Under the pieces are notes generated by a model. It ran no database searches. It saw nothing but the letters and a program-made list of their open reading frames with translations, and had not been told where the DNA came from. The position numbers and the translations under genes are program-made. 64,000 nucleotides of DNA, taken from positions 269,491 to 333,490 of the forward strand of contig NIVC01000048.1 in the NCBI GenBank assembly GCA_002269645.1, given 5' to 3'. Positions within the stretch are counted from its first letter, which is position 1, and every line of letters starts with the position of its first letter. Positions 11,135 to 63,677 of this stretch are shown piece after piece. The stretch comes from Macrostomum lignano. Its lineage: Eukaryota.

Positions 11135-11690
11135 GCAGCTGGCGCCCCCTCCCTCTGTAGCTGGCGCCCCCTCCCACTGTAGCTGGCGCCCCCTCCCTCT
11201 GTAGCTGGCGCCCCTCTTTCCTTCTGTAGCTGGCGCCCCCTCCCTCTGTAGCTGGCGCCCCCTCCCTCTGTAGCTGGCGCCCCCTCCCTCTGTAGCTGGC
11301 GCCCCCTCCCTCTGTAGCTGGCGCCCCCTCCCTCTGTAGCTGGCGCCCCCTCCCTCTGTAGCTGGCGCCCCCTCCTTCTGTAGCTGGCGCCCCCTCCCTC
11401 TGTAGCTGGCGCCCCCTCCCTCTGTAGCTGGCGCCCCCTCCCTCTGTAGCTGGCGCCCCCTCCCTCTGTAGCTGGCGCCTCCTCCTTCTGTAGCTGGCGC
11501 CCCCTCCCTCTGTAGCTGGCGCCTCCTCCTTCTGTAGCTGGCGCCCCTCCCTCTGTAGCTGGCGCCCCCTCCCTCTGTAGCTGGCGCCCCTCCCTCTGTA
11601 GCTGGCGCCCCCTCCCTCTGTAGCTGGCGCCTCCTCCTTCTGTAGCTGGCGCCCCCTCCCTCTGTAGCTGGCGCCCCCTCCCTCTGTACA
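11135..11690. repeat. 21-22-bp minisatellite (gctggcgccccctccctctgta)
   Basis: About 25 tandem copies. Confidence 0.93.
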
Positions 11691-14084: not shown

Positions 14085-14828
14085 TCAAGCGAAAGGTGAC
14101 AGGCACTCGCACAGAACATTGGAAACTTCATTGTATGCGTCCCAGATATCCGTGAGACCCTTTAAATTGAGATATTTTCCAATTGCATTGTCACCACCAC
14201 CGTAGTCATTAGGCTCGCCAGGGGCCCAGAAGCTGCCAACGCTGGTGTTGCAGCCGACCCAGTACCAGCCGCCCAGAGGCTCCGCACTGCCTGCTGACTG
14301 GCGGCCTCCGAGCCAGATCGATTGTCCAGAGCTGTAGGTTGAGTAGATCGAGTCCACGTGCCTCATCTCCTGGGCGCTGGTCACGTCGGCCATGATGACC
14401 AGACCGCTCTCTGACTCGCACTTCTGTCTGCTCGGCCACCACGTCCCGATACCAGAGTACAGCCTATACTTCACTCCGCACAGGTCCATGCCGTAGCCAG
14501 ACGGACACAGCGCGCCCGCCTCGAGTCCCGGCCGCTGCTTGACGAACACCCGGCCTCTCCTGGAGCAGCCGCAGCTCCTCACCGACTTGCTGCACTTGTC
14601 GAACACGAACAGCTGGCACGGACCGTCAGCCAGGCTGAACGCCTGACAGCGCTGGTTTTGGGCGCACAGAGCGGCGCACCCGACTTTGAGTGCGCTTGAG
14701 TAGGTCTCAACAAACTCGCCGTTGATGCAGAGATATCCGTTGATGAGAACATACAGTTGCTGGTTGTCACTGCCGAGCGTGAGGCCCAGAGCCAAAAACA
14801 TCGTCAGGAGATTGATGCTCATCGTCAA
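14085..14828 (-). CDS. Secreted PAN/apple-like + C-type lectin domain protein (EPN type), single exon, 247 aa
   Basis: Signal peptide MTMSINLLTMFLALGLTLG; PAN-like CAALC..CQAFS..CQLF; CTLD hallmarks CPSGY, CGVKYRLY, W..SRQKCES, IWLGG, WYWVG, WAPGEPN, terminal VLCE. Confidence 0.85.
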   Translation of the reverse strand: MTMSINLLTMFLALGLTLGSDNQQLYVLINGYLCINGEFVETYSSALKVGCAALCAQNQRCQAFSLADGPCQLFVFDKCSKSVRSCGCSRRGRVFVKQRPGLEAGALCPSGYGMDLCGVKYRLYSGIGTWWPSRQKCESESGLVIMADVTSAQEMRHVDSIYSTYSSGQSIWLGGRQSAGSAEPLGGWYWVGCNTSVGSFWAPGEPNDYGGGDNAIGKYLNLKGLTDIWDAYNEVSNVLCECLSPFA

Positions 14829-24990: not shown

Positions 24991-25743
24991 TCAGTCAAAC
25001 GGAGACACGCATTCGCACAGCACTCGATCCGTGGCATACGTTTCAAAAAGGTCTGAGAGTCCATTCGCATAGCTATACCTTGCGATAACGTTCTCATTAC
25101 CGATTAGGTCTGGCTGTCCAGTGGCCCAGAAGTTTCCAACGCTGATATTGCAGCCGACCCAGTACCAGCCGCCCAGAGGCTCCGCAATGCCTGCTGGCTG
25201 GAGGCCTCCGAGCCAGATCGATTGTCCAGAGCTGTAGGTTGAGTAGATCGAGTCCACGTGCCTTATCTCCTCAGCGCTGGTCACGTCGGCCATGATGACC
25301 AGACCGCTCTCCGACTCGCACTTCTGCCTGCTCGGCCACCACGTCCCGATGCCAGAGTACAGCCTGTACTTCACTCCGCACAGGTCCATGCCGTAGCCAG
25401 ACGGACACAGCGCGCCCGCCTCGAGTCCCGGCCGCTGCTTGACGAACACCCGGCCTCTCCTGGAGCAGCCGCAGCTCCTCACCGACTTGCTGCACTTGTC
25501 GAACACGAACAGCTGGCACGGACCGTCAGCCAGGCTGAACGCCTGACAGCGCAGCTTCCGGGAGCACAGAGCGGCGCAGGCCAGCTTTCTGACCACGGCT
25601 GGGTGGGACTCGACGAACTCGGCATTGATGCAGAGGCTGCCGTCAATGAGGCTGTACTGCTGCTCGTTGGCATTGGTGAGTTCGAGTTCGTGACTCATCA
25701 CAACCATGAGAACGATAGTGAAGACAATTTTCAGCTGGCTCAT
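24991..25743 (-). CDS. Secreted PAN/apple-like + C-type lectin domain protein (QPD type), single exon, 250 aa
   Basis: Signal peptide MSQLKIVFTIVLMVVMSH; same architecture as 14085-14828; WATGQPD motif. Confidence 0.85.
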   Translation of the reverse strand: MSQLKIVFTIVLMVVMSHELELTNANEQQYSLIDGSLCINAEFVESHPAVVRKLACAALCSRKLRCQAFSLADGPCQLFVFDKCSKSVRSCGCSRRGRVFVKQRPGLEAGALCPSGYGMDLCGVKYRLYSGIGTWWPSRQKCESESGLVIMADVTSAEEIRHVDSIYSTYSSGQSIWLGGLQPAGIAEPLGGWYWVGCNISVGNFWATGQPDLIGNENVIARYSYANGLSDLFETYATDRVLCECVSPFD

Positions 25744-32895: not shown

Positions 32896-36130
<3,235 letters not shown>

Positions 36131-36534: not shown

Positions 36535-39500
36535 AACAAAATGATCCGAGACCAGCTAGCCCAGAAGACCAACAGCACCCGAATTTGCGAGCGTCTTCTG
36601 ATGGAGGACGCCGCCAGGCTGACGCTAGAGCAAGCAGTTGTCATCGCGACTACAATTGAGGATGCAGTGGAGGCTAAAAGCTCCTGCACCCGATGCAGTC
36701 GGAGCCACGAGGCTAAGGCAAAGTGTCCCCCGCACGGCAGGAAATGCAACAGTTGCAGGAAATTGAACCACTTCAGTCGATGCTGCCGCAGCAAAGCACT
36801 CCAAGTCAGCGCAGACGAGACGGTCATGATCTCTGCCGTGCATGGCAGCGACGAGATCCGAGTCGAGCTTCAGCTGGGCAACTGCTCGAAGACTGTCAGC
36901 CTGATGGTCGACTGCGGCGCCAAAGTTTCTCTGCTCAACGAGGCTACGGCAGACATCGATCATCGATCTGAAGCCATCGGCAGTGCAGCTATGAGCTTAT
37001 GGCGGGAAGAAGATCGCCGTCGCGGGGCTTTCAACAGTCGGCGTCAAGTACCACGGCCAAGTGCAACACGACTTTCACGTCACTAGGTCGGGCGAAAATA
37101 TTGTCGGCCGCGATCTGATGCAGAAGCTGGGTATCCAAGTGCGACTCCAGCCTCACGATGCTAACATCGGAATTGCCAACGTGGACATCGCCCAGCGGTC
37201 TTCGACGGATCAATCGGTCTCTGCAGAGGTGCACCAACCGAGGATCAACACGGTCGTGCCACCAGTGCAGCAGCCGCTGCGCCGCCTGCCACTCGCCAAT
37301 CAGCAATAGGTCGGCGAGGAGCTCGACCGTCTGGAGGCAGCAGGCATCATCCAGCGGGTCAACTCAAGCCCATGGATTTCTAATCTGGTCGTGGCGAACA
37401 AGAAGAATGGCAGCATTCGAGTGTGCATCGACGTGCGCAAACTAAATAAGTCGCTGATCATCGACCGACACCCAATGCCGCAGTTGGACGAGATCTCTGC
37501 AAAGATCAAGGCGGCCAGCAGCCACATGTTCTCCAAGATCGACCTCAAGGTGGGCTACATTCAGATGCAGCTACACGAGTCATCACGTGACCTGACGACC
37601 TTCATTACGCACCAGGGCTTGTACCGTTACTGCCGGGTGCCGTTTGACCTAGCGTCTGCTCCGGCGGCCTTCCAGAGGATGCTGGACAACCTGGTGGCTC
37701 ATCTGCCAGGAGTGGAGCACATCTTGGATGACTTCATCGTCTTCGGAGCAACTGAGGACGAACATGACTCGAGGCTGCAAGCTCTGCTGAAGCGACTGGA
37801 GGACGCCGGCCTCACCTCCAACAAGGACAAGTGCGAGCTACGGAAGACCGAGATAGTTTTTCGGCTTCGTCTTCTTGGCGGAGGGCATCCGGTCGTCCAA
37901 GTCTCAGACCAAGGCTTTCAACGAGCTGCGCGCGCCGACGAGCAAAGAGCTGCAGGTGTTCCTTGGATCGGCAAACTATCTGATGTGGTTCGTGCCCCAC
38001 TTTACCGAGGACACGACGCTGCTGAGGTCTCTGCTCAAGGGCGATGCCGAGTTCAAATGGACAGCTCAATGCGAGCGAGCCTTCCAGGCGCTGAAAACGG
38101 CAATCTGCAATCCGCCGGTCCTGACGCACTTCGACCCCGATGCCGGAACAATCGTCACCAGCGACGCCAGCGCCGAGTCCCTGGGCGCACAGCCGATCGA
38201 ATTCGCGGCACGCGCGCTGATAGAGATCAAGAAACGTTACTCTGCGAACGAGCGAGAGGCGCTGGCGAGCCTGTGGGCCATGGAAAAGCGGCACTACTAC
38301 CTGTTTGGGCGCCATTTCGAGCTGCGAACGGATCACCAGGCCCTGCGACAGCTGCTGCTGGGACCCAGCGACACCGGACATCGGCCGCTGCGCATTCACC
38401 GGTGGTGTGACCGATTTAAGCAGTACGACTTTTATGTGCGCTACCATACATGCGCAACTGCTGGCCGACCTGGCCACCGTAAATTGTGGTGGACCAGGGG
38501 TAAGTCGCAAAAATGCACACCCCAAAGAATACAGACGTAGTACTAATTAGATGACAAGGCATTTAGCCCTTATAAGACAGTCATAGTTACTCTTGCCGTT
38601 TACCCAAAATTGCGTTACTGTTGCTCTAGGGTTTCTTTCACAGGTAAGTCGCATTTTTGGTCAAAAAGTAAGTCGCATGGCCAGTGTAAATTAGGGGGGG
38701 GGGTTGCGCATGTATGTGCGCTACCTCCCGGGAGTCGCAACTTGTTGGCCGACATGCTGTCCAGGTGGAGCTGCAGGTCGGACATGAACGTCGTCCAATA
38801 GCCGGACACCGCGATGCCTCGACTCCGAATCATCACGCCACAGCGGCTAGCGACGGGCACAGCAGAGGACACGATACTGCGCGAAGTCATTCAGCGAGTT
38901 ACCACCGGCAACTGGAGTTCGGCCAAGGACACCAAGTTGCAGCCGTACGTAAAAGTCCGAGAGCATCTCAGAATCTGGCAAGACGGCCCCTGCCTGGCCT
39001 TCCAAGACCGCGCCATCATCCCACAGGACCTGCGCGGTGAGCTTTTGGAGTTCGCGTATGCGGGACACCCGGGGGTGGTGCGTACCAAGCAGCAGCTTCG
39101 TGAGTTTGCCTGGTGGCCGAGGATGGAAGCCGACGTCGAGACGTTTGTCAGAGACTGCGAGACTGCGGAGAAGCTTTCAAGCTGCGACCGGCTCTGCTGC
39201 AGCCCCTGCCATGGCCAGACTCGCCGTGGACAGAGATCGCCATCGACATCGTGGGTGAACTGCAGGCAGCGCCAGCATCGTTATAATTCCTACTGGTCAT
39301 CACGGATTTGCACAGTAAGTGGCCGGAGGTCTTCGCGACTTCAAGCATTACCACCGACACTGTCTGTAAGGTGCTACGCAGGCTGTCTGCGAGAAGGTCC
39401 TCACTGACAATGGACCCCAGTTCGGTGACGCCTTCACCGGTTTCCTGCGAGAGCATCCAACACCTGAAGACTTGTCCATATCGTCCAGTACAGAGCACCA

Positions 39501-45110: not shown

Positions 45111-46265
45111 ATGCCGAGCACCGAGTGCAAGTGCAACAACGTACAGTGTGAAGCTGCAAGCTCGCCAGATCCACTACAGTCAGAGAGGCAACCTCAACCT
45201 ACGACAGCATTCCCGCTGCAAGGAGGAGCAACCAACAGCAGTAACACCAGGCCGTGCACAGGTATGCCTCACCTGTACCATGGGCAACAGGCAGCACCAA
45301 CACCAGGGACTCGACTGACACCAATCTATGCAGAGGCAGTGCATGCTCCAGTGCAGCATCAATTCAGTCAGCCTCCCTTATCACCAGTGCCCAAGCCTGC
45401 ACCATTCAATAGCTGAGAGAATTTTGACGACTTCCTAAGCCGAATGTCAGCATTCATGAGTCGGTTCCCAGGATTGGGTGAGCACGGCAAAATTGCAACT
45501 TTAATTGCTTATCTAGGACCTGCATTTGCCACGTACGCAGCTTGGTTCGACCAGCAGTGCGTCCTGCATGGGTTGCCAGTTGGTTCAAACCTGGAGCACC
45601 TCCCTGGAGCACGGTATGACTCACTGCTACAGTTTCTGCGAGCGCGGTACGGAGGAGCAAAGAGTACAGCCTTGCTTCGGCTTGAGCTTCGAAGTCGATA
45701 CCGAGGAAAAGATGAAACCTTCGAACAGTTTCTCACTGCATTGCAACGCCTGGCTGTCAAAGCATTTCCTGATGCAGGTGCTCACGAGTTCCTTCAACAG
45801 GCTGTCTTGGACCAGTTAATCCAGGGCCTAAACAACAGCTATGTGTCAGAGCGTCTTCTTAATATGCCAATGGCAGTGACAACAACAGAGCAAGCGCTCC
45901 GATGGGCTCAGCAGATCCGCGAGACTCAGCAATTCCTGGAAGGCCAAGGACATAATCAGCAGCATCAACGCGGCACGGCGACGTCGGCACCCGTGGTGGG
46001 ATCAGCAGCTCCGCCAATGCATGGACAACGACCTGGTGGTGAGCACCAGAGTGACCCAACAACATCGTGGAAGCCACTGAATCGACAGCCGCATGCGACC
46101 CCAAGACCACCTCAGCAACAGGCCCAAGCTCAAGCTGGCCATCATCCGTCGCACCGACCAATGCCAGTGTGTTACAGCTGTAATCTGCCAGGTCACATTC
46201 GAAGGAACTGCCCAAACGCCAGGGGGGCTGGTCCACAGGGCCAGTACCGGCCCTCTCGGCACTGA
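45111..46265 (+). pseudogene. gag: gag of the gypsy element, in-frame TGA at 45414-45416
   Basis: PAPFNS*ENFDDFLSRM is colinear and in frame; C-terminal CYSCNLPGHIRRNC knuckle. Confidence 0.8.
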
Positions 46266-46299
46266 GCAAATCGGCCCCGCCCTCACGCCCCAGCTGCCA

Positions 46300-49200
46300 G
46301 CCCGGTCAAGCGCGTTTCGTCACCGCGCGCATCTGCAGACGTCGTCGGCCCTGCTTGATCGACACAGGTGCCGAAGTTTCCTGCATCAGTCTCAACATCG
46401 CGCGATCAATCAGGCGGCAGTTCAAACCCAGCAAAAAAACCATCTATGGCGTGAGTGGCAATCCGGCGAGCGTGCTGGGTGAGATTCATTTGTACTTCTC
46501 TCTCGGATCTGTCCAGTTTCAACACACCTTTCTGGTGGTGACAGACTTAAATGTACCTATAATTCTGGGATGTGACTTTCTTGACAAGCAAGACTGCTTA
46601 ATTCATCTCGGTTCGGGCTGTCTCGTTTTCAATGGCCTTGGAGCAACAGTGCCGCTGCGGAAGTCGAAGCAGGCAGCGCAGTCCAGCAAACTGGTGGCGG
46701 CAGCAGCAGTTCAGTTACAGCCTGGTGAAGGTTGGACCCGTTCCAGTCCGACCGTTGCACGTGACCGCGTGGACAAGTTCGGAGGCACCCGGCATCGTCA
46801 ACGGTAGCAGGTCATCGAAGGTCTTGATTGCTCGCTGTGTAGCCAAAATATCGAACAATGGCATGGGCGTCGCAATCATCAACGCTAGCGATGCACCGGT
46901 GGCTGTCAGAGAAGGCGACACCATCGGATGGTTCACGCCACTCAGCAGCCAAGGCGGGACGCGGCTCCAGTTTACCAGCATGGCAACAGCGACAACCTCA
47001 ATAGATGGCAATGCACCATGGCTTCGAGAAGTGCACATTGCCGACGAAATTTCAGCGAGTGAACAGCAGCAGATCAGAGACCTCCTTCTGGAATTCAACG
47101 ACGTGTTTGCATCACCTGGCAACCAGGGCTGCACCCGTCTGCTGAGCCATACCATCGACACCGGTGATGCGAGACCGATCCGGCAAGGTATACGCCGTGC
47201 AGCTCCTACGGCAATCGTGCAGCAAAAAGAGCTGGTCGAAGACATGCTGAGCAGAGGTGTCATTCAGCCATCATCTTCTCAGTGGGCGTCGCCGATTGTC
47301 CTGGTTCGAAAAAAAGACGGCTCGGCACGTTTTTGCCTCGACTACCGGCAGCTCAACTCGGTGACCAAGCCCGATGCATTTCCAATGCCTCGCGTTTACG
47401 ACACGCTGGATGCGCTGGAGGGCAACAGTTTTTTCTCCGCACTCGACCTGGAAAGCGGATATTGGCAAGTTGAAATGAATGAGAAAGACAAAGAAAAAAC
47501 GGCATTCGTCTGCCACGAAGGCATTTTTGAGTTCAACGTAATGCCATTCGGCCTCCGCAATGCACCAGCTACATTCCAGCGCTTGATGCAATTAGTGCTC
47601 GGGGACTCACGTGACAAGCGTGCCTTGTCTTCATAGATGATGTTATCGTCATGGGCCGGACGATGGCCGAACACAACAATCGGCTAAGAGCGGTGCTAGA
47701 GCGTCTTCGCGAAGCCAACTTGCGTCTTAAGCCGTCCAAATGTCGTTTCGCCAATTCCAGCATCATCGTTCTGGGTCACCGAGTCTCCAGGACTGGCATC
47801 GCAGTCGACGAGTCGAAGACAGCAGCAGTGCGCGACTGGCCAAAACCGCACTCGCCAAGGACGTCAAAAGTTTCCTTGGCATGACATCGTACTACAGGAG
47901 ATTTGTTCGCGACTACGCCAAGATTGCAGAACCGCTAAGGCGACTGACTCTGACAACCGGCTTTAAATGGACACCAGCCGCCGAAGTGGCCTTCAACCAG
48001 TTGAAGCAAGTGCTTACATCCGCGCCGATCCTGGCCTTTCCGGACACCAGCGACACTGGCGGTGAGTACATCTTGGACACCGACGCCAGTGATTGCGCAG
48101 TTGGTGCTGTTTTGTCGCAAATTCAGGCTGGTGAAGAGCGAGTCGTGGCGTATGCAAGTCGCACGCTGTCTCGGGCTGAACGCAATTACTGCGTGACACG
48201 GCGCGAGCTACTGGCAGTTGTCGAATTTGTAAAGAAATTTCGAAGTTATCTGCTGGCACGGCCATTCACGATCAGAGTCGATCATCAAGCCCTGACGTAC
48301 CTGCTGAACTTCAAGGAACCGGAGGGTCAATTAGCGAGATGGTTGCAAATCCTCGACGAGTTTGACTTCGAGATAGTGTTCCGTCCTGGACGTCAGCACT
48401 CGAATGCCGATGCACTTTCACGCCGGACATCGAAATGCACGATTCAGTGCCGGGTTTGTCGGCCAGAATCGGCAGCTGAACTACGGAAGCCGTCAGCTAC
48501 GGTAGCTTGTCAAACGGAGCCAATTGCGGAGACAGCGAGGCCGGTTGCGAACGTAGCTTGCCAAGCAGAAAAATTCGCTGAAACACCAGTGCAAACGGCA
48601 TCAACACCCTGTCAAGTGGAAGCTGGTGGTACTAAACTCGCGCTGGTCAACGAGGCGACGACAGACCCTGCGCCTTCAGCAGCCGACCCTCAGAACGACC
48701 CTAGGACTGCTGGCCGCGCTCCATCTAGACGGAAGCAGCAGCTGCAGCCGAGGCCAAGCGAAAGCGAGGAGTCCAGCGATAGTGATGACCAGGATGATGA
48801 TGGCGACAATGAGACCGGCCAGGCGAGAGCAATGCAGTCGAACGAGTCTCTGACGCTGCGTGAGCGGCAGCTCAAAGACGCTGACATCGGACCAGTATTT
48901 CGTCTTCTCGCCAAAGGCAAGACAAGACTCAGCGACCAGCAACGAGCCCGACTACCACCAGGGAGCCTGATCCTGGCGCAGAAGATCAAAGAACTATGTT
49001 TCGTTGATGGAGCCCTGCACAGACTGGTGGAGTCGAAGCAGCTGATCGATGAGATTCACGAAGTTGGTCATCTGGGCGAAGCGAAGACACTGGCAGCCCT
49101 CAAGTCGAGGTGTTACTGGCCGAAAATGTCCGAGAGCATCAGAGTTGCAGTCAGAGCATGTCAGGTGTGCCAGCGCGCCAAAACCAGCGGCCATTAGCGG

Positions 49201-50173
49201 GCACCACTTCGATCGATAGAGAGCAGTTTCCCGATGCAGCGCATAGGCATCGATGTGGTTAAGATCGGCGTGTCTCGGCATGGAAATGATCGTCTGTTGA
49301 CGATCATGGACTACTTCACGAAGTGGGTGGAGCTGGTGCCTACGCCGGATGAGAAAGCAGCAACAATTGCCAGGGCGCTGTTTGACAATTGGGTGTCGCG
49401 GTGGGGCGCACCGCACATCCTCCACTCCGACCGTGGCAAGGCCGTTGACGGGAAAATAATCCGGAGCCTCTGCAGACTGCTCGACGGTACAGAAGACGCG
49501 GACGTCTGGTTACCATCCGCAGTGTGACGGTCTGGTAGAACGGTTCCATCGCATACTCCACCAGATGCTCCGCTGCCACCTTCAGACCGTCCAGTTCGAC
49601 GAGTGGGAGGAGGTGTTGCCGCACTGTCTCCTTGCTTACCGCAGTAGTGTCAACGCAACCTCCGGTTTCACGCCGCACTTTCTGATGACGGGCCGAGAGG
49701 TGACCTTGCCGCTGGACATTGTCTACCGACTGCCGGAGCCACCGAGAACTACAGGAAAATTCGCCGCGGACAACCGGGATCGACTGCTCAGCGCCTTCGA
49801 ATCCGTGAGGCTGGCGACAGCAGCGGCACAAAGACGGCAGCGGCGCTACTACGACCAGAAGGCGGCGCGGCGCCGTTTTCGAGCAGGCGACCTGGTGTGG
49901 CTCTTTGTGCCGCCGTCGGCCCTGTCGCGGACGAGTGGCCTGCCACGGAAGCATCAGGCACCGTGGACCGGACCGTTTCGAGTTCTGCGGCGTACATCGC
50001 CTGTCAATTACCTGGTCCGCCCCGTTGAGTACAAGGACGGCGATGCTGGCCGGGTGGTCCACGTCAACAAACTGAAGCGAGCGCATCAGCCACGGCCCCT
50101 GGATCAGCCTCGGAGCGGAGCGGCCAGTGACGACAGCAGTGAGGTGCTTGACGCTGACTGGGTCGTCATTTGA
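46300..50173 (+). pseudogene. pol: pol (PR-RT-RH-IN) of the gypsy element, fragmented by frameshifts and a TAG at 49195-49197
   Basis: ORF pieces 46355-46807, 46632-47636, 47740-49197, 49234-49527 and 49565-50173 carry successive PR, RT, RH and IN motifs. Confidence 0.88.
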
Positions 50174-51888
50174 TAGAGTGTGAGGATATGGACTGTGCTG
50201 AGGTTCCTTGGACTTAAATTGCAGAGTGCACAAATTTTCCCTAATTGAAGTTCAGCATGTACAATGTTGTAAGTTTTAATCGCAATTTTGTTCGCGTTTT
50301 GGCTGCCCCATCTGTCTAGAGTCCTCTTTTGTGTGGCGGTGGTCGATGCTTGGCGGGTTTTGGACTGTGGGGATTAGTATTGTTCAGTTTGGCCCTTGTT
50401 GGCGCAGCCGTGCCGCTGTACTGCATACCCTTTAGAATTCTGTTGGAATTTACGGTCGTGTTTTTATTATTGATCTAATTGTGCTGCCCTATTTCAGCTG
50501 CTTTAATGCACTTCGCGAAATACTTCAGTGTTACTTATTATTTTCATGCCTTCTGTGTAAATATTTCTTTCGCTTTTATCGCTCAATATTTCAATATCAA
50601 AATAATCGCACTATTTTATTAAAAAAATTCTTTTATTGCTTCTTATTAAGGCATAACCTATCGATCCAACAATTCGTTCATTTAATCGAAATCGTACCTT
50701 TAAATCCCCGATTGCTGTTCCTGGTCCCAATGAAATCGCACAATTCAATGTATTCAACTGTCAAGCAAGTTGGCATGTCACAAGTCCCATTTGGGCTGTT
50801 TTCATGTGTTTCTAACCCTGTATTGTGCATTTCTGTGGGGAATCAAGCATCCGAAATGTTATGGAAGCATTGGTTGCCCGTTTCTTTTGCGATGCATCTT
50901 GGCTGCTCACAGTGCGGTGCTTCGCCTCTTTTGCCGATCTGTAGCATTAAGCCGAGTACTGATGTGCTCACTACTTATATGCATATACCGTGAATTTTGT
51001 GTGACTGTAAAATTGTGGTAAACTACATGTAACTTTCTCCTTGTGTAATGCAGTTTTTTTGCCAATGAGGACATTGTCAATTTCCGTTGGGGGGGATAAT
51101 GTAGCAAATCTCATCATTGAATTTCGTATGGATGCATTTTTGTTTAGTTGGGGGTTAGGACTGTTAATGTATAATATCGATAATGTATTTTGTTGTAATT
51201 TCCGACAGTGCGCCCCAATTTAAAAAGCGCTCTCGCATCAGACCATGTTGGTACTGTAAGCGGGGAAGTGACTCGGCACCTCGAAATATAAAGTCAAAAT
51301 TGCGTTTGAATCGCGTTTGATTGACGTCTCGACAAAGTGCAAGTCTTACACATAAATTAATTGAAAACAATGATTAATAATTTTTCACTCTTAAAGCAAA
51401 CACGCTTGAAGATATTAAACCGATGTAAATTGTAAATGAGGCCCGGTTTCAGTCAATTTATTAGAGTGAACAATATTTGAATTCACTTTTGTTATACAAA
51501 CGTTGCGAAAATTAGACAAATCGATTTGAAACGGGGTGAACGTGAAAGTTCCTGCAAGCAAACTTCGGCAAGTAAACTTCCCTGTCACTCACCCTGTCCC
51601 TGTCATTCCTGTCACTCTCACCCCTGTCCCTCCTGTCACACAGCCTGTCAACCCTGTAAACCCTGTCACCCCTGTCACCAAAGAACACGAACTTAATGAA
51701 CATATAAGTATATTTGCTTTTAACCATGATCCATGCATTTGTAGCAGCCGATCATTCAATTATCAGTATATTTTAATGCATATTGCTGACAATATTGCTG
51801 GAACACAGACTGTCAGTCTTGAATAAATCTGTTTACATGACGCCAGTTTTTATTGCCGTTAATTTTGTTTGCTTATTAATCATCAGCC

Positions 51889-53281: not shown

Positions 53282-54221
53282 CGTGCACTGAATCAAGAGT
53301 GGCAGGATTTCAGCTGGCCGGGATGACTCAGAGGTTGAATAATTGAATTCCTAGGCCGATTACCAGGTAGATAGACAGCTTATTCAATGTAGAGAGTTCC
53401 AGACGTGTCCCAATGGCTTAGTGACCAAGACTTTAACAAGGACTGCAAGGCGATCTCAATAAATAGTACTGTGCTACCCGGCCAAATATGAATAAAGATT
53501 TATATTTCAATTGATTCCATCGTCACTGCAGGTTTCTGTCTGCCCCTGTAAGCCAATTTTTGCCACAATGGCCGTTTGCCATCTGTTTACAATATCAAAC
53601 AGAGGGGCGCCAGTGATGAGAAGCTTCTTTAGAAAAGCAAAAGAATGTTAATTATTGCTGCTAAAATGCACTCGCCATATTCAACCCAGCAGAGTCTCAG
53701 CTGGCTCGAATGCACACGAGACGAACAGGCGAAAGCATTCGGAGAGACGGGGAGAGCCAACCCCCTGTTACTTGGCAACCGATCGTCTGCAACTGCTGCA
53801 ATTGGGAAGGCCAGCGGGCAGGGTGAAAGAGAAGCCTGACCAAGTTTAACAATGCATTTTTCTTGCACATTTGAACGCCTTCTCAAACCTGATGCACTGA
53901 GGGACTGAGAAGCATTTTACACTGCTCAGTAGGCCATGAAAAGCGTTCGCAGACCTCACACTGCACAATGGGTCAGCTCAGCCTCATCAAGTACAGCTTG
54001 GGGTGGCCGCTGCAGCCGCAGCCTCTCCGTTGCCATGCTGGGTGCACAGAGGCGAAGGCGGCGGACTCAGCGCTCATGCACGGGTGAGAAGATTCGGCTG
54101 CAAAGGCCAGGGGTGGTCGGCGCTCGCCAGAGGCTGCAAAAAGGTGGGCAGCTGAGAGATGAGGCGGTAAAATCTTTCTGGCAACCGGCTGCACAAACCT
54201 TTGAAACATCTGTCGCTCTGA

Positions 54222-54410
54222 GTGCAGCCGTGACTGACATCTGCCACTCTGACAGCAGCCGTGACTGACATCTGCCGCTCTGACAGCAGCCGTGACTGAC
54301 ATCTGCCACTCTGACAGCAGCCGTGACTGACATCTGCCGCTCTGACAGCAGCCGTGACTGACATCTGGCACTCTGACAGCAGCCGTGACTGACATCTGCC
54401 ACTCTAACAG
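54222..54410. repeat. 31-bp minisatellite (gccgtgactgacatctgccactctgacagca) upstream of the ankyrin gene
   Basis: About 6 copies. Confidence 0.9.
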
Positions 54411-54537
54411 CAGACAATAATCACAGACAGTAAAAGTTGATTAAAGAAGTAGAGTGATAAAAAAACTACAAATCGTTCGTGACAAGCAATTAAGAATATT
54501 CTTTCTAGATCAAACAATCTCTGCTGAACCAAGGAAA

Positions 54538-57500
54538 ATGCAGGTTGATCACGAGATCAGTGCTGATGAGGCTGCCAGCACAGGAAATATCCAAGCACTC
54601 AGACATCATCTCGACCGTCAGATAGGAGAAAAGAACACATATTTTTTTTGCAAAAGGTATTTACCTGATGCTGCATCCCATGGTCACTTAGAACTGGTCA
54701 AGTTTCTCGTGCCGACAGTCGCTGACCAAAAACAAAGAGATTATTGCTGCATCAAAGCTGCCGAATCTGCTGCAGTGAAGGGCCACATTGAAATCGTCAA
54801 GTTTCTCGTGCCGACAGTCGCTGACCAAACAAAAAGAGATGATTGCTGCATCAAAGCTGCCGAATATGCTGCAGTGAAGGGCCACATTGAAATCGTCAAG
54901 TTTCTCGTGCCGACAGTCGCTGCGCAAACAATAAGAGATGATTGCTGCATCAAAGCTGCCGGATCTGCTGGCAGATATGGCCACATTGAAATCGTCAAGT
55001 TTCTCGTGCCGACAGTCGCTGACCAAACAAAAAGAGATGATTGCTGCATCAAAGCTGCCGGATCTGCTGGCAGATATGGCCACATTGAAATCGTCAAGTT
55101 TCTCGTGCCGACAGTCGCTGACCAAACAAAAAGAGATGATTGCTGCATCAAAGCTGCCGAATATGCTGCAGTGAAGGGCCACATTGAAATCGTCAAGTTT
55201 CTCGTGCCGACAGTCGCTGACCAAACAATAAGAGATGATTGCTGCATCAAAGCTGCCGGATCTGCTGGCAGATATGGCCACATTGAAATCGTCAAGTTTC
55301 TCGTGCCGACAGTCGCTGACCAAACAAAAAGAGATGATTGCTGCATCAAAGCTGCCGAATATGCTGCAATCAAGGGCCACATTGAAATCGTCAAGTTTCT
55401 CGTGCCGACAGTCGCTGACCAAACAAAAAGAGATGATTGCTGCATCAAAGCTGCCGGATCTGCTGGCAGATATGGCCACATTGAAATCGTCAAGTTTCTC
55501 GTGCCGACAGTCGCTGACCAAACAAAAAGAGATGATTGCTGCATCAAAGCTGCCGAATCTGCTGGCAGAGATGGCCACATTGAAATCGTCAAGTTTCTCT
55601 TGCCGACAGTCGCTGACCAAACAATAAGAGATGATTGCTGCATCAAAGCTGCCGGATCTGCTGGCAGATATGGCCACATTGAAATCGTCAAGTTTCTCGT
55701 GCCGACAGTCGCTGACCAAACAAAAAGAGATGATTGCTGCATCAAAGCTGCCGGATCTGCTGGCAGATATGGCCACATTGAAATCGTCAAGTTTCTCGTG
55801 CCGACAGTCGCTGACCAAACAAAAAGAGATGATTGCTGCATCAAAGCTGCCGAATCTGCTGGCAGAGATGGCCACATTGAAATCGTCAAGTTTCTCGTGC
55901 CGACAGTCGCTGACCAAACAAAAAGAGATGATTGCTGCATCAAAGCTGCCGAATCTGCTGGCAGAAATGGCCACATTGAAATCGTCAAGTTTCTCGTGCC
56001 GACAGTCGCTGACCAAACAAAAAGAGATGATTGCTGCATCAAAGCTGCCAAATCTGCTGCAGACGAGGGCCACATTGAAATCGTCAAGTTTCTCGTGCCG
56101 ACAGTCGCGGACCAAACAAAAAGAGATGATTGCTGCATCAAAGCTGCCAAATCTGCTGCAGACGAGGGCCACATTGAAATCGTCAAGTTTCTCGTGCCGA
56201 CAGTCGCGGACCAAACAAAAAGAGATGATTGCTGCATCAAAGCTGCCAAATCTGCTGCAGACGAGGGCCACATTGAAATCGTCAAGTTTCTCGTGCCGAC
56301 AGTCGCTGACCAAACAAAAAGAGATGATTGCCGCATCAAAGCTGCCGAATATGCTGCAGTGAAGGGCCACATTGAAATCGTCAAGTTTCTCGTGCCGACA
56401 GTCGCTGACCAAACAAAAAGAGATGATTGCTGCATCAAAGCTGCCGCATCTGCTGCATTCAATGGCCACATTGAAATCGTCAAGTTTCTCGTGCCGACAG
56501 TCGCGGACCAAACAAAAAGAGATGATTGCCGCATCAAAGCTGCCGAATCTGCTGGCAGAAATGGTCACTTTGAAATCGTCAAGTTTCTCGTGCCGACAGT
56601 CGCTGACCAAACAAAAAGAGATGATTGCTGCATCAAAGCTGCCAAATCTGCTGCAGACGAGGGCCACATTGAAATCGTCAAGTTTCTCGTGCCGACAGTC
56701 GCGGACCAAACAAAAAGAGATGATTGCCGCATCAAAGCTGCCGAATCTGCTGGCAGAAATGGTCACTTTGAAATCGTCAAGTTTCTCGTGCTGACAGTCG
56801 CGGACCAAACAAAAAGAGATGATTGCTGCATCAAAGCTGCCGCATCTGCTGCATTCAATGGCCACATTGAAATCGTCAAGTTTCTCGTGCCGACAGTCGC
56901 TGACCAAACAAAAAGAGATGATTGCTGCATCAAAGCTGCCGAATATGCTGCAGTGAAGGGCCACATGGAAATCGTCAAGTTTCTCGTGCCGACAGTCGCG
57001 GACCAAACAAAAAGAGATGATTGCTGCATCAAAGCTGCCAAATCTGCTGCAGACGAGGGCCACATTGAAATCGTCAAGTTTCTCGTGCCGACAGTCGCTG
57101 ACCAAACAAAAAGAGATGATTGCTGCATCAAAGCTGCCGAATATGCTGCAATCAAGGGCCACATTGAAATCGTCAAGTTTCTCGTGCCGACAGTCGCTGA
57201 CCAAACAAAAAGAGATGATTGCTGCATCAAAGCTGCCGAATCTGCTGCAGTGAAGGGCCACATTGAAATCGTCAAGTTTCTCGTGCCGACAGTCGCTGAC
57301 CAAACAAAAAGAGATGATTGCTGCATCAAAGCTGCCGAATATGCTGCAGTGAAGGGCCACATTGAAATCGTCAAGTTTCTCGTGCCGACAGTCGCTGACC
57401 AAACAATAAGAGATGATTGCTGCATCAAAGCTGCCGGATCTGCTGGCAGATATGGCCACATTGAAATCGTCAAGTTTCTCGTGCCGACAGTCGCTGACCA

Positions 57501-59981
57501 AACAAAAAGAGATGATTGCTGCATCAAAGCTGCCAAATCTGCTGCAGACGAGGGCCACATTGAAATCGTCAAGTTTCTCGTGCCGACAGTCGCGGACCAA
57601 ACAAAAAGAGATGATTGCTGCATCAAAGCTGCCAAATCTGCTGCAGACGAGGGCCACATTGAAATCGTCAAGTTTCTCGTGCCGACAGTCGCTGACCAAA
57701 CAAAAAGAGATGATTGCCGCATCAAAGCTGCCGAATATGCTGCAGTGAAGGGCCACATTGAAATCGTCAAGTTTCTCGTGCCGACAGTCGCTGACCAAAC
57801 AAAAAGAGATGATTGCTGCATCAAAGCTGCCGCATCTGCTGCATTCAATGGCCACATTGAAATCGTCAAGTTTCTCGTGCCGACAGTCGCGGACCAAACA
57901 AAAAGAGATGATTGCCGCATCAAAGCTGCCGAATCTGCTGGCAGAAATGGTCACTTTGAAATCGTCAAGTTTCTCGTGCCGACAGTCGCTGACCAAACAA
58001 AAAGAGATGATTGCTGCATCAAAGCTGCCAAATCTGCTGCAGACGAGGGCCACATTGAAATCGTCAAGTTTCTCGTGCCGACAGTCGCGGACCAAACAAA
58101 AAGAGATGATTGCCGCATCAAAGCTGCCGAATCTGCTGGCAGAAATGGTCACTTTGAAATCGTCAAGTTTCTCGTGCTGACAGTCGCGGACCAAACAAAA
58201 AGAGATGATTGCTGCATCAAAGCTGCCGCATCTGCTGCATTCAATGGCCACATTGAAATCGTCAAGTTTCTCGTGCCGACAGTCGCTGACCAAACAAAAA
58301 GAGATGATTGCTGCATCAAAGCTGCCGAATATGCTGCAGTGAAGGGCCACATGGAAATCGTCAAGTTTCTCGTGCCGACAGTCGCGGACCAAACAAAAAG
58401 AGATGATTGCTGCATCAAAGCTGCCAAATCTGCTGCAGACGAGGGCCACATTGAAATCGTCAAGTTTCTCGTGCCGACAGTCGCTGACCAAACAAAAAGA
58501 GATGATTGCCGCATCAAAGCTGCCGAATATGCTGGCAGATATGGCCACATTGAAATCGTCAAGTTTCTCGTGCCGACAGTCGCTGACCAAACAAAAAGAG
58601 ATGATTGCTGCATCAAAGCTGCCGCATCTGCTGCATTCAATGGCCACATTGAAATCGTCAAGTTTCTCGTGCCGACAGTCGCGGACCAAACAAAAAGAGA
58701 TGATTGCCGCATCAAAGCTGCCGAATCTGCTGGCAGAAATGGTCACTTTGAAATCGTCAAGTTTCTCGTGCCGACAGTCGCTGACCAAACAAAAAGAGAT
58801 GATTGCTGCATCAAAGCTGCCGGATCTGCTGGCAGATATGGCCACATTGAAATCGTCAAGTTTCTCGTGCCGACAGTCGCGGACCAAACAAAAAGAGATG
58901 ATTGCCGCATCAAAGCTGCCGAATCTGCTGGCAGAAATGGTCACTTTGAAATCGTCAAGTTTCTCGTGCTGACAGTCGCGGACCAAACAAAAAGAGATGA
59001 TTGCTGCATCAAAGCTGCCGAATCTGCTTACAGTAATGGTCACTTTGAAATCGTCAAGTTTCTCGTGCCGACAGTCGCTGACCAAACAAAAAGAGATGAT
59101 TGCTGCATCAAAGCTGCCGAATATGCTGCAGTGAAGGGCCACATGGAAATCGTCAAGTTTCTCGTGCCGACAGTCGCGGACCAAACAAAAAGAGATGATT
59201 GCTGCATCAAAGCTGCCGCATCTGCTGGCAGATATGGCCACATGGAAATCGTCAAGTTTCTTGTGCCGACAGTCGCCGACCAAACAAAAAGAGATGATTG
59301 GTGCATCAAAGCTGCCGAATCTGCTGCAAGCAATGGTCTGCAGGATGTCGTCGAGTTTCTTATCTCGTTTCTCTCAAGTCCCGATCAGAGAGCGAATCTC
59401 CGTTTCCAATGCGCAGTCGCGACTTGCTCTCGTCTTCACGAAGATGTCGCTGCCTTCCTTGGCCTAGAGCCCGACTGGCTCTTCCAATCCAGCACCATCC
59501 TCAGCTTCACTGCAGCAATGGCCATCGAAGGCAGGAACTCTGTTCTCACCGACACCCTATCTCGAATGCAGCCACCTCACATCACACAGCTGCTCCGTCT
59601 CTCCATCTCTCAAAGACACGTCGCTCTTGCTGTCACAATTGCTGTCACACTGATCAATGATGAGCGAGTCAGCACACAGCATGTCGATCTCCCAGAAGAC
59701 AGCACTGGAGCCACTGCTCTCATGCTGGCAGCTGATGCAGGTCATCATGAGCTCATTGAGAAACTCATCGATCTCGGTGCGTCAGTGCGTGCTGAAGACA
59801 GTCAGGGTCGGACTGCTCTGTCACGAGCGTGCGAAGCCGGTCATGTGCGAGCAGCCAAGGCTCTGATGGACAGAGGAGCGGATGCGAGTCATCGAGACGG
59901 TCGGGGTCAGACGTGTGCGCAGGTGGCACAGCGATTTGAGCAGCAGCAGGTGCTGCGGCTGCTTCATCCCAGTGAAGCGGG
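54538..59981 (+). CDS. Giant ankyrin-repeat exon (~1815 aa): N-cap, 47 x 33-aa ankyrin-like repeats, spacer, ~3 canonical ankyrin repeats
   Basis: Single open frame. Repeat unit GHIEIVKFLVPTVADQTKRDDCCIKAA+6 variable aa; C-terminal GATALMLAA..GRTALSRAC..GQTCAQVA. It ends at the donor GG|GTGAGT (59981/59982), and a candidate upstream acceptor ctttctag lies at 54508. Confidence 0.88.
54763..59334 (+). repeat. Coding tandem array of 99-bp units (47 variable cassettes)
   Basis: The first and last cassettes are 4554 bp = 46 x 99 apart. Confidence 0.97.
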
Positions 59982-60240
59982 GTGAGTGAGGCAATGTTAT
60001 TGCTTGTAAAAATTCTTGCAATAGAAAATGCAATTGGCAGAAGTAGAAAACAAAGGGAACAAGAAAAGAGGTGAGCCAGAAAAATGGGAGAAAAAGAGAA
60101 AACAGAAAAAAGACGCAACAAGAACGCCCCCATCCGCTTTTTGAATTTTTTCTACTTCGAGAGAAACTTCTGGTGCATGACAATCTCCGACTCAACTGCT
60201 GTGAGAAGTGAGAACCCTTACTTTCCTTCCTGCATTGCAG

Positions 60241-60294
60241 TAGCCCAGAGGCCCGGCAGGCAGCCGCTCACCGCTTGGAGTCGGGCCGCCATCG
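60241..60294 (+). CDS. Putative 54-nt linker exon between the ankyrin and Mab-21 exons
   Basis: Strong acceptor ctttccttcctgcattgcag and donor GTGAGT; open in phase 2 (SPEARQAAAHRLESGRH). Confidence 0.45.
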
Positions 60295-60402
60295 GTGAGT
60301 CTGACCGGTTCGGCTTTCACTGCCTCATTGCACCTTCCAACAGGCTGGCAGCTTGGGGCAGAAATTGCAGCGAAACTCGGCAGGGATGAGATTGGGTTGG
60401 AC

Positions 60403-60841
60403 TGAGTGCTGCAGCAGCTGCACTCTCAGCTCTCCTGCTTGAGATGCCAGTCTGAGTGCTGCAGCAGCTGCACTCTCAGCTCTCCTGCTTGAGATGCCAG
60501 TCTGAGTGCTGCAGCAGCTGCACTCTCAGCTCTCCTGCTTGAGATGCCAGTCTGAGTGCTGCAGCAGCTGCACTCTCAGCTCTCCTGCTTGAGATGCCAG
60601 TCTGAGTGCTGCAGCAGCTGCACTCTCAGCTCTCCTGCTTGAGATGCCAGTCTGAGTGCTGCAGCAGCTGCACTCTCAGCTCTCCTGCTTGAGATGCCAG
60701 TCTGAGTGCTGCAGCAGCTGCACTCTCAGCTCTCCTGCTTGAGATGCCAGTCTGAGTGCTGCAGCAGCTGCACTCTCAGCTCTCCTGCTTGAGATGCCAG
60801 TCTGAGTGCTGCAGCAGCTGCACTCTCAGCTCTCCTGCTTG
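60403..60841. repeat. 50-bp tandem array (8 full + 1 partial), each unit containing ctgcactctcag|ctctcctgctt
   Basis: Identical units start at 60403, 60453, ... 60803. Confidence 0.95.
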
Positions 60842-63677
60842 TTCCGTCCATCCAACTCTGAGCAAATCTCTCACACGCATCTCGAATCGTTCCAGGCTCT
60901 CAGATGACTCTCAGCAAGACAGGCGTCTGAGTGAGGAGCTGCATCGACTGCTCAGCGAGGCGGGATTCACCGAGGAGAGAGCAAAGTGTCAGCAGAGACT
61001 GGCTGACTGGCTGGAAGAAGTCGCTCAAGTCCTCACACAGGATGACAGGCAGATGACGGGCAGCTACGCAGAGGGCTGGGCCAACAGTCTGGTGCAAGTG
61101 AACGGCAGGACAGCTGCAGACTCGGACATTGACTGGACTGTGCTGGTTGCTGGGCAAGAGTTCCATCTGGAAGGTGGCTGCGACAGAGAGGGATATCGTT
61201 CCTGCCGAGACGCCACTCGGCTGCAGGTCATGGAGGGCCACGCACAGGTGGCAGTGGGAGCAGGTGAGTGAGGCTGGGTTCATCATCAGAATGCTGAGAT
61301 CCGCATGCAACTGGAGGCCCATTAACTTTGCTCAACTTTAAATTTTGCAACCGAGTGGCGCATAGTCTCCAGCAGTTTCTGTGACTGCGAATGTCGGCTT
61401 GGGTGCTGAAATAAGCGGCAGGCGAAATTGAAAAGAAAACTTTGATGCCAACTGGCTGAGCCGGGCCATTGGGTTTTGAATTCACAGGCTCCGATTGCAG
61501 CAGAGTGGATGCAGCGGTGCTTGGGTGACCCACGGTAGGCGGCATGGCTCTGCTGAGGTGCTGCTGCTCTCACTTGGGAAATTTCAAACAAAATAAACCG
61601 AAGCCGCCCTGACTGCCTGATTGGTGCCTTGCTGCGGGGCACTGAGTTCTGATGATGCTTGAGCAGCTGTGCTGAGCTGCAACCTGATGAAGCCAGAGCA
61701 CCTGAAGCTGAAGCTGGGTGAACTCAGTGGGTGCAGAGGCTCATGCCTCACAGGTGCACTTATTTGGCTCTTCAAGAAGCGTCGAAATTCTGTGACGTCT
61801 CACCGAGCAGCTTGTGCTGTACACTGGGCCAGACGGAGAGCATTGCAACCCTCGCCACACAGCGAGAGGCGCCCCCCACTCTCACTGGAGTCTCTAACGC
61901 CTTTGCAGGCTAGGCAACGCCGCCCACAATGTACACATTTTTTATTGATATTAAATAAAAATAGCTCGTGTGTATTGATTAGTAAATGAAAATGGAGTTG
62001 CAAAAGCAAAATTCCCAACCGGCCAGGAGCAAATCTGCAGTTTCAAACCAACCCATTTTTTTCACTCGCCACAAAGCCACTCTCCGCTCACTGCGCTTTG
62101 CAGGCAGCCAACCTGCAGTGACAGCCACGGCGTGCGGTGTGCGGCCTGCACAGGACACGTGCCATGCAATCGAGTGCTGCAGCAGTTTCTGTGAGGACAG
62201 AAGTAGAAAACCGGTTCTATTCAATAACAGAGTTCACCTCGTGCGGGCGACCAGACCGAGCTCGACCAACGAGCTCAGAGTGAGCTTCAGCTTCCAAGAG
62301 AAATACATCATGGGACGGCTGAGCACAGTCCAGGGCCAGCTGTTCACACTCATCAAGTTCATCTTCAAGAGACACTTGCCGCTCACTCTGGACACACCTG
62401 GACTCAAGACCTACCATGCAAAGACACTGCTCTTTACAATGCTGGAGAAGCATGGCACAGATACCGAAACTGACGCTTGGAAGCTCCACAATCTGATCGC
62501 TCTGCTCAAGGAGTCTCTCGACTTGATGCTGAGCTTCATCGACTCGAGCAGCTCGCCCGATGAGTGCATGCCGCACTTCTTCATGCCCGACGCTCCGCTC
62601 TACTTCAAGAACGCTGGAATCGGCGGCGACTTCGACAATACGAAGGCGAGGGTTCGAGACGGACTTTTTGAGCTGAGAAGCGACATCGGTGGAGTGGTCG
62701 AGCAGCTGAGGAGACTCGTGAGACCTCTGCAGTCAGAGAAGTTCTACTTTCACCCGTTCACTCTGCTGCCTCTGACAGCGCCGCCTGCTGTCACTGAGAT
62801 CAGGGAAGGAAGTGGCTACACAGAAATGTACTACAATTTCGCAGACGTGTACAGTATGGTGCACCAGTGTGTGAGCGAGCTGCAGTCGGAATCAAGCAAA
62901 AGATACACCCTGATGAGGCAGCTCAGTCTCCTGCATGAGCTGCAGTGGTGCAAGTGCGCCGCCCTGTGCATGACCGCAATGGCGCATTTGAAGTTCAGAG
63001 AATCTGAGGAGGCTGAGAGACTCGCGATGGAGCTGCAGAGACATCAGGTTCAGTCAGGGTTAAAGCCACAGGGTATTCGAATTTATGAATTGCCAGCAGA
63101 CTCAGACTGGGCGTGGAGGTTCTGCCTCCCCTGCGACTCTCCGCCTCGCTTCCCATTCCTTCCCGAGTTCACGCAGACTCTGTTCACAGCCAGACTGTCG
63201 CAGCCTCTCTCCTCCCACCTGTACGTGAACTTTCGCTGCCTGAGCTGGAGTCTCCAAGCTGAGCTGCTCTGCAATCGCGCACCTGCAATTAAACTGGACG
63301 ATTGGAAGCGAGAGCTGGAAGAAGACCCGGACTTGGAGGAGCTGCTCACTCTGGCTCACTACAGCGACTGCCGCGAGCACGTGGAGCTCAGCTTGCAGCA
63401 GATGGAGATGATCGAGAAAGAGAGACGCGTCGTCATGGAGACGCAGGACGAGGAGAAGATCGGCTGGGTCAGGCAGAAGCGGTGGCGAGTTTCGAACCGC
63501 AGCGGCAGCGACAGCGGCGCTCACCGCAGCAGGGAAGATGAGGAGCGGAGGCTGTGGGCGAGGGCGAGGCTGCGGCGAGACGGGGTCGACTTGGGTCGCT
63601 TCGTTGCCATGGAAACAGCAGCGGAGCAGAGAGACAGCTGGACTCACGTCAAGCTTATTCGAATGAGACTGCAGTGA
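60830..63677 (+). CDS. Mab-21/cGAS-like (cGLR-type) nucleotidyltransferase domain, exons ~60830-61263 and 62104-63677
   Basis: NTase signature TGSYAEG..DSDIDWTV and third acidic site QDTCHAIEC. Mab-21 C-lobe RVSFSFQEKYIM..QGQLFTLIKFIFK..LKTYHAKTLLF..CMPHFF. The phase-1 junction CAG|GTGAGT / ctttgcag|GC keeps frame. The 5' boundary of the first exon is uncertain. Confidence 0.8.

Follow-up and report, generated by a model that had tools for sequence, protein, structure and literature searches.

A giant ankyrin-type array with a variable six-codon patch joined to a cGAS-like nucleotidyltransferase in Macrostomum lignano

Here we describe a gene of the flatworm Macrostomum lignano in which, as predicted from the genomic sequence, an ankyrin array of great length is fused to a cGAS-like nucleotidyltransferase (NTase). 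The gene occupies positions 54538–63677 (+) of a 64,000-nucleotide stretch (hereafter the window; positions 269,491 to 333,490 of contig NIVC01000048.1, assembly GCA_002269645.1), and reads as a single intact four-exon gene whose introns are all GT-AG, with GTGAGT at every donor and CAG at every acceptor (Table 1). The spliced coding sequence of 7,440 nt translates without internal stops into a protein of 2,479 aa and 274 kDa, in which no signal peptide was seen by eye (no predictor was run). Its N-terminal 1,800 residues make up an ankyrin-type solenoid, comprising 47 near-identical units and about six older repeats common to all paralogues, and the enzyme module that follows retains, by alignment, a complete catalytic site. 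These data favour, with slightly more confidence than doubt, a functional ankyrin-gated cGAS-like receptor (cGLR).

The ankyrin exon lies within an open reading frame (ORF) of 1,843 codons (54454–59985, +) whose first ATG, at 54538, aligns to the N-termini of paralogue proteins, and it ends on the donor GG/GTGAGT at 59981/59982. A first-pass annotation of the window had described an ankyrin exon of about 1815 codons with a canonical donor and, less than 1 kb further on the same strand, a Mab-21/cGAS-like domain; both descriptions hold, the next enzyme-coding exon (exon 3) beginning 915 bp 3' of exon 1. A second ORF (61986–63677, +) covers exon 4, and tblastn with paralogue proteins gave matches at 59026–59982, 60894–61265 and 62100–63674. 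Three exons of the four-exon path proposed in that annotation are exact and its phases (2, 2, 1) are correct, but exon 3 starts at 60896 rather than 60830. The acceptor at 60830 is in phase, yet it sits inside a 50-bp intronic tandem repeat and adds 22 residues absent from every paralogue, and was rejected; the acceptor at 60896 (ttccag/G) restores the paralogue sequence ...HRLSDDSQQDRR, and the junctions of exons 2 and 3 give the paralogue sequence GSPEARQAAAHRL...HRLSDDSQQDRR. The annotation put the length of the product at about 2500 aa, close to that given above.

Could the ankyrin ORF and the enzyme exons instead be transcribed separately, or the length of the array be an assembly error? 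GenBank shows two separate partial models at the locus, a transcript that kept intron 1 would run into the stop at 59983–59985 and yield an ankyrin-only product, and the other available assembly, Mlig_3_7, breaks in the array and is noisy there. Against this, the exon phases fit, and the array has ordered, non-random unit types in perfect frame. Arrays are, moreover, usually shortened and not lengthened by assemblers, which further counts against an artefact. For more than 10 paralogues there are transcript-based models in which a single ORF runs from the ankyrin part into the enzyme part over the junctions seen in the window gene, as the fusion of array and NTase in the first-pass annotation would have it. 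The partial model at this very locus, P0014 (BOX15_Mlig001355g1), is 100% identical to the window, including the exon 3/4 junction. The BOX15 models derive from RNA-seq-guided transcript assembly followed by ORF calling, and transcripts overlapping annotated repeats were dropped before their submission to GenBank (PMC5730564). Overall, we consider two genes or an assembly artefact very improbable indeed.

Table 1. Features of the predicted gene and the evidence for each (window coordinates; P numbers denote proteins and L numbers loci).
Feature	Position	Strand	Description and evidence
Exon 1	54538–59981	+	5,444 nt, 1,814 codons + 2 nt; encodes the N-terminal cap, then the 47-unit array and the older ankyrin repeats; ORF, ATG alignment, GTGAGT donor
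Ankyrin-type array	54697–59349	+	47 exact 99-bp / 33-aa units, predicted ankyrin-type, consensus VKFLVPTVADQTKRDDCCIKAAESAARNGHIEI; Tandem Repeats Finder, AlphaFold2 (AF2), Foldseek
Post-array ankyrin region	59350–59981	+	kept in all paralogues (tblastn, 62–90% identity); canonical ankyrin pair at ~59707–59898
Intron 1	59982–60240	+	GT-AG; retention gives an immediate stop (TGA 59983–59985)
Exon 2	60241–60294	+	54 nt, linker (G)SPEARQAAAHRLESGRH; translation equals P0002 residues 150–168; cag/ acceptor, /gtgagt donor
Perfect 50-bp × 8.8 tandem repeat	60402–60841	+	within intron 2; also in L001 and paralogue locus L003
Exon 3	60896–61263	+	368 nt; predicted NTase spine helices and N-lobe; tblastn P0002/P0007/P0008 80–85%, P0014 100%
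Exon 3 catalytic codons	G56-S57 61059–61064; D78 61125–61127; D80 61131–61133	+	putative, hhalign to human cGAS
Intron 3	61264–62103	+	GT-AG; junction matched by P0014 at 100% identity
Exon 4	62104–63677	+	1,574 nt including stop; D141 (62154–62156), RVSFS and KTYHAK nucleotide-binding motifs
Exon 4 domains	Mab-21_C lobe ~62388–62600; helical C-terminal domain of ~260 aa from ~62724; then basic tail	+	predicted; Pfam, AF2, profile

Two non-coding repeats accompany the gene. The 50-bp repeat of intron 2 recurs at 3069–3507 of L001, the Mlig_3_7 contig described below, and at 10815–11154 of the paralogue locus L003, where it has 6.8 copies in the same intron; its unit contains, by eye, a short hairpin (GAGTGC...GCACTC). 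A 31-bp tandem repeat lies at 54206–54413, about 125 bp 5' of the start codon, and arrays of the same period stand directly upstream of two paralogues (L002, 9123–9484; L003, 9522–9793), the likeness being judged by period. Such upstream arrays could represent a common promoter-proximal element.

The array is regular at both levels. Its 47 units are spaced exactly 33 aa apart in the protein, and Tandem Repeats Finder reports a 99-bp unit in 46.8 copies with 93% matches (54697–59328). When the Ank and Mab-21 profiles suggested by the first-pass annotation were applied, Pfam Ank_2 matched the ankyrin ORF at E = 4e-232, and the single-repeat Ank profile passed alone only for the two canonical repeats (ORF residues 1752–1815). 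An AF2 model of units 42–47 with the post-array region, with a predicted local distance difference test score (pLDDT) of 91.5, runs the solenoid continuously into these canonical repeats. In the model an inner helix of 17 residues (positions 11–28) leads in each array unit through a GH turn to a second helix of 10 residues, and a loop of 3 residues follows. Foldseek searches with the array model returned only ankyrin proteins as top matches, among them designed ankyrin repeat protein (DARPin) fusions at E ~1e-10, ankyrin-R D34 at a template modelling (TM) score of 0.59 and AnkB R13-24 at 0.55. DARPins and ankyrin-R/B thus provide the best structural matches, and share with the array a 33-residue period and helix-turn-helix stacking. 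They differ from it in the length of the inner helix and loops, and in two features that the array lacks: the TPLH motif was found in none of the 47 units, which read ...DDCCIKAA... instead, and DSSP assigned neither a beta-hairpin finger nor strands to array units in the AF2 model. As modelled, the array is an atypical ankyrin solenoid that runs into canonical repeats, and with about 53 repeats in all the protein has roughly double the number found in ankyrin-R/B (24).

The units are close to one another in sequence, with a mean pairwise DNA identity of 92%, and fall into 21 different sequences as DNA and 15 types as protein, the types following the order ABCCBCDCECCEFGGGHIJGJIKGDABCGGHIJGJIKGLIJCJMKNO. 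What differs between them is concentrated in one place: 10 of the 18 nucleotide sites in codons 23–28 are variable, compared with 7 of the remaining 81 (Fisher p = 3e-5). Codons 23, 24, 26, 27 and 28 take 4, 2, 3, 6 and 5 amino-acid states, respectively, most other codons are invariant, and the distinct variant codons comprise 31 non-synonymous and 4 synonymous ones. These six codons fall at the end of the inner helix, directly before the GH turn. Positions 27 and 28 are the two before GH that are randomised in DARPin libraries, and positions 23, 24, 27 and 28 (i, i+1, i+4, i+5) would fit one face of the helix. This analogy supports the view that the array may vary at positions that serve binding in ankyrin scaffolds. 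The variability is nonetheless limited, comprising about five main patch types (AVK, GRY, GRN/GRD, ADE and AFN) in 15 unit types, and does not resemble the combinatorial diversity of variable lymphocyte receptors (VLRs). The first-pass annotation took the array to be diversified, which holds in so far as variation is concentrated in codons 23–28.

The number of units is read from a single assembly because Mlig_3_7 breaks, and is noisy, inside the array. There, contig NIVC01003220.1 (L001) begins within the array and has no substitutions relative to the window outside it, whereas the 2 kb inside it differ by 41 substitutions and 60 indels. We considered L001 as an independent allele and rejected it, since the lack of outside substitutions and the indel-rich array end mark the same locus at a noisy contig end; L001 shows only that at least ~20 units stand ahead of the same downstream exons. 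Within the window, units 14–24 and 28–38 form an 11-unit block repeated one 14-unit period apart at 99% identity, which reflects a recent internal duplication of 14 units (1,386 bp). On the antisense strand, too, a frame of 1,531 codons stays open through the array, which renders the open frame uninformative on selection, openness being a property of the repeated unit.

These features would suit a reading in which the family is real but a coding minisatellite in one of its paralogues has recently expanded, with effectively neutral or even harmful effect, into the 47-unit array, which would have no role of its own in recognition. In addition to the high unit identity, the near-identical block and the open antisense frame, tandem repeats constitute 15% of the genome (PMC5730564) and are plentiful in the window, and the three close paralogue loci (L002, L003 and L004) hold just 0–3 units of this type. 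The confinement of variation to a six-codon patch is, however, unlike neutral decay. The patch types differ by several nucleotides each while the 81 flanking bases are near-identical, and the same patch differs among the units of paralogues such as P0020. We rate a runaway minisatellite as rather unlikely. The giant array with its variable patch is in any event a new element that has not been described before: a search of 5.8 billion proteins with six units and the cap found none more than 51% identical over most of the query, and hence no counterpart that is annotated, although one 145-aa M. lignano fragment reaches 63% identity over 43% of it.

Downstream of the solenoid, fold and profile comparisons confirm the prediction that exons 3 and 4 encode an NTase of the cGAS/Mab-21 fold. 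The 647-aa C-terminal module was modelled by AF2 with 16 family sequences (pLDDT 80.6, predicted TM score 0.82; residue numbers below are those of the module). The first-pass annotation had looked to structure prediction for an NTase fold, and this was found: in Foldseek searches of the PDB cGAS structures take each of the first 42 ranks (best E = 5e-6, target TM 0.50–0.56, ~14% identity), and MAB21L1 (5eom) first appears at rank 43. Sequence profiles agree. A family profile matches cGAS (E = 3e-5) as well as cGLR1 (8gjy, E = 0.002), with RVSFSxxEK...KTYHAKT lying against RLSFSHTEK...SYHVKT; a single-sequence search of PDB sequences with the enzyme gave chance matches only, such that the family profile is needed. 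In Pfam, the window enzyme scores 22.7–23 bits with Mab-21_C (PF20266), under the cut-off of 24.1, and Mab-21 (PF03281) was not detected in the window protein. Paralogues pass PF20266 at 25–32 bits, and distant relatives drawn from the family profile pass both PF03281 and PF20266. The sub-threshold Pfam result, the part of the profile comparison that fell short, is a limit of sensitivity and no contradiction.

Alignment to human cGAS supports the retention of a complete catalytic site, comprising the G-S loop, D-x-D and a third Asp. In hhalign comparisons with residues 157–522 of human cGAS (identical to PDB 4lew_B), the local alignment begins exactly at D141, equivalent to D319, and its extended form pairs G56/S57 with G212/S213, D78/D80 with E225/D227, and R182/S184/S186 with R376/S378/S380, with a gap at the cGAS zinc thumb. 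A near-invariant histidine, H168 (VHLVRATRP), was considered as a substitute for the third catalytic Asp and rejected, as hhalign places its strand on cGAS FYLVPK. Across ~135 family sequences the catalytic and nucleotide-binding columns are 85–99% conserved (G56 134/136, S57 129/135, D78 126/137, D80 124/137, D141 107/126, R182 134/140). The enzyme therefore resembles human and mouse cGAS in its predicted fold, in its catalytic residues (G-S, [D/E]-x-D and Asp) and in two motifs that contact the nucleotide, RxSxS and YHxK. It differs in its low overall identity, the missing zinc-thumb insertion, and an acidic core (isoelectric point, pI, 5.8) where cGAS has a basic DNA-binding surface; the protein also carries the ankyrin solenoid and, at its C-terminus, a further domain. 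MAB21L1 and other Mab-21 proteins lacking a functional active site have the same fold, from which the window enzyme is set apart by catalytic residues that are present and conserved in the family.

The additional C-terminal domain, of ~260 aa (62724–63500), is helical, conserved, confidently modelled and specific to the family, with the motifs FYFHPFTLLPL, DWAWRFC and FLPEFT; comparison with Pfam and PADLOC returned nothing for it, and the PADLOC bacterial defence models gave no match to the enzyme core either. At the extreme C-terminus the window protein carries a basic tail of pI 11, and the family members P0012 and P0019 a hydrophobic segment resembling a tail anchor. A conserved Cys/His-rich insertion in the N-lobe (GGC...C...GH...CHAIECCSSFC), which cGAS lacks, spans 61180–61263 and 62104–62200 (module residues ~92–152); it is modelled with low confidence (pLDDT 52–67) and could form a metal site.

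It may be asked whether such an enzyme is active at all. The Mab-21 module might make no nucleotide signal, as is suspected for MAB21L1, leaving the protein as an ankyrin scaffold or adaptor, and the Pfam results above would suit this. So would the screen of Li et al. 2023 (PMC9980059): 140 proteins were tested with nucleic-acid ligands, five M. lignano enzyme-domain constructs are listed in its Table S3 (#89–93), and these constructs are missing from the 15 active enzymes, those being enzymes of insects, anemones, molluscs, hydras and corals, with no flatworm among them. The screened M. lignano constructs, however, were without the ankyrin part and met only nucleic-acid ligands. Nucleic-acid-sensing cGLRs have a pI above 8.5 (PMC9980059), in contrast to the core of the window enzyme. 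The full catalytic set aligns to cGAS and is kept in 85–99% of ~135 diverged relatives, and since such conservation would scarcely be expected unless catalysis were under selection, we regard a pseudoenzyme as distinctly unlikely.

The gene belongs to a large family. The downstream ORF matches about 30 M. lignano proteins at 44–100% identity, most of them 650–950 aa long with ankyrin repeats followed by Mab-21_C, and in a family profile search the number of cluster representatives falls from 938 at E < 1e-3 to 204 at E < 1e-10 and to 91 at E < 1e-30. All 19 of the named representatives looked up are from M. lignano; the more distant profile matches are ordinary Mab-21 proteins. Beyond the three close loci with few units, P0020 and P0021 hold ~8 and ~12 units, diverged along their whole length, and other long proteins of the family lack this unit type. 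Separately, P0037 (BOX15_Mlig012150g1) and P0307 (BOX15_Mlig018330g1) each encode, within a single ORF, ankyrin repeats and a cGLR module together with a caspase domain at the C-terminus (Peptidase_C14, E = 2.7e-25). Unless these are chimeric gene models, they link the family to cell-death machinery.

Recent work by Li et al. defined the cGLR family, with more than 3,000 sensors from animals, of which 87% are stand-alone and some carry TPR or ankyrin modules, and reported that most platyhelminths hold only Mab21-like proteins (PMC9980059). The ankyrin-cGLR fusion is thus an already published category, and the first-pass annotation overstated its novelty. According to Table S2 of that study, Ank_2 occurs in PAA68676.1, PAA86972.1 and PAA45980.1, at least three of the five M. 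lignano constructs, and constructs #92 (PAA93208.1) and #93 (PAA68676.1) are close paralogues of the window gene whose enzyme domains have already been cloned (PMC9980059); both fall in the same subfamily as paralogues 78–87% identical to the window's enzyme exon. The catalogued ankyrin-cGLRs resemble the window gene in placing ankyrin repeats N-terminal to a cGLR NTase with a complete active site, and differ from it in having a few ankyrin repeats, where the window gene has its 47 near-identical units and their variable patch. A literature search for Macrostomum together with cGLR or cGAS returned nothing specific, the link being made by the supplementary tables of Li et al., and in the literature after that study we found no paper on ankyrin-cGLR function.

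Two further systems offer comparisons. Leucine-rich repeat (LRR) receptors, including NLRs and lamprey VLRs, likewise join a repeat solenoid to a signalling module, and concentrate variation on one face of it, as the window protein may do; they differ in repeat fold, and the window protein has a small set of main patch types only. RNase L couples ankyrin repeats to an effector nuclease in the OAS pathway, where the ankyrins receive the signal (2-5A). It resembles the window protein in that ankyrin repeats are joined to a protein of a nucleotide second-messenger pathway, and differs in that the window protein joins them to the enzyme that would make the signal rather than to a nuclease that receives it.

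Taken as a functional ankyrin-gated cGLR, the protein could have arisen and could work as follows. The array would have grown recently, by unequal crossing-over, from the 0–12 units seen in paralogues, with the framework of the units kept homogeneous and the six-codon patch held in its alternative states. The solenoid would bind a non-nucleic-acid ligand, such as a protein or repetitive polymer, or would keep the enzyme inactive; its engagement would turn on the synthesis of a nucleotide second messenger, which would then act on a downstream receptor. An immune-receptor role, ligand recognition by the array and gating of the enzyme are all steps that we infer. A bolder version takes the array as a fast-evolving recognition module, in which crossing-over and gene conversion shuffle patch cassettes such that strain-specific arrays bind pathogen proteins or polymers and activate the cGLR; we hold this to be quite improbable.

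Several points weigh against an ankyrin-gated cGLR. The unit identity and the near-identical duplication suggest that the array is very young, and it need not have been tested by selection. Its count of 47 units rests on one assembly. The surface exposure of the patch is deduced from alignment and helix periodicity, and the spatial clustering of D78, D80 and D141 likewise from alignment. The full-length product of this locus is a prediction from genomic sequence, and GenBank annotates the locus with no more than the partial model of the enzyme and, within the array, a spurious model of 79 aa. Finally, the five M. lignano domains outside the active set of Li et al. include those of the two close paralogues (PMC9980059).

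Elsewhere in the window, retrotransposon remnants lie upstream of the gene at 36541–39407 (+) and 45444–50233 (+). Pfam detects reverse transcriptase in both, and RNase H and an integrase zinc domain in the second, which also contains a gag-like ORF (45444–46265) and an aspartic-protease-like ORF (46355–46807), both judged by eye only. Thymidylate synthase is encoded in two exons, 32896–33573 (-) and 35468–36100 (-) (Pfam E = 2e-69 and 2e-39). Two paralogous ORFs of ~250 aa at 14085–14828 (-) and 24991–25743 (-) have hydrophobic N-termini and near-identical, cysteine-rich C-terminal halves, with no Pfam match for either. At 6853–8697 (+), an ADP-dependent glucokinase/phosphofructokinase exon (Pfam E = 6e-51) continues in frame into a G/W-rich tandem repeat in which several frames are open on both strands, and an ORF at 3222–3815 (+) encodes a RING finger (zf-RING_2, E = 1.6e-6).

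cGLRs are now regarded as a major family of innate immune sensors in animals; their known ligands are nucleic acids only, and a minority of them carry appended repeat domains. In M. lignano we find a very large ankyrin-cGLR family with acidic cores, absent from the published active enzymes when tested without the ankyrin part. The gene described here yields a concrete hypothesis, namely that the ankyrin solenoid may be the ligand sensor, and its variable patch shows where to look; M. lignano is amenable to RNA interference and transgenesis, making the hypothesis testable. If the array does serve as a recognition module, it would constitute a germline-diversified ankyrin counterpart of LRR receptors, in a phylum mostly without immune-type cGLRs according to Li et al. 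Were it only a young coding minisatellite, it would still be a clean case of a repeat domain ballooning within an expressed gene family.

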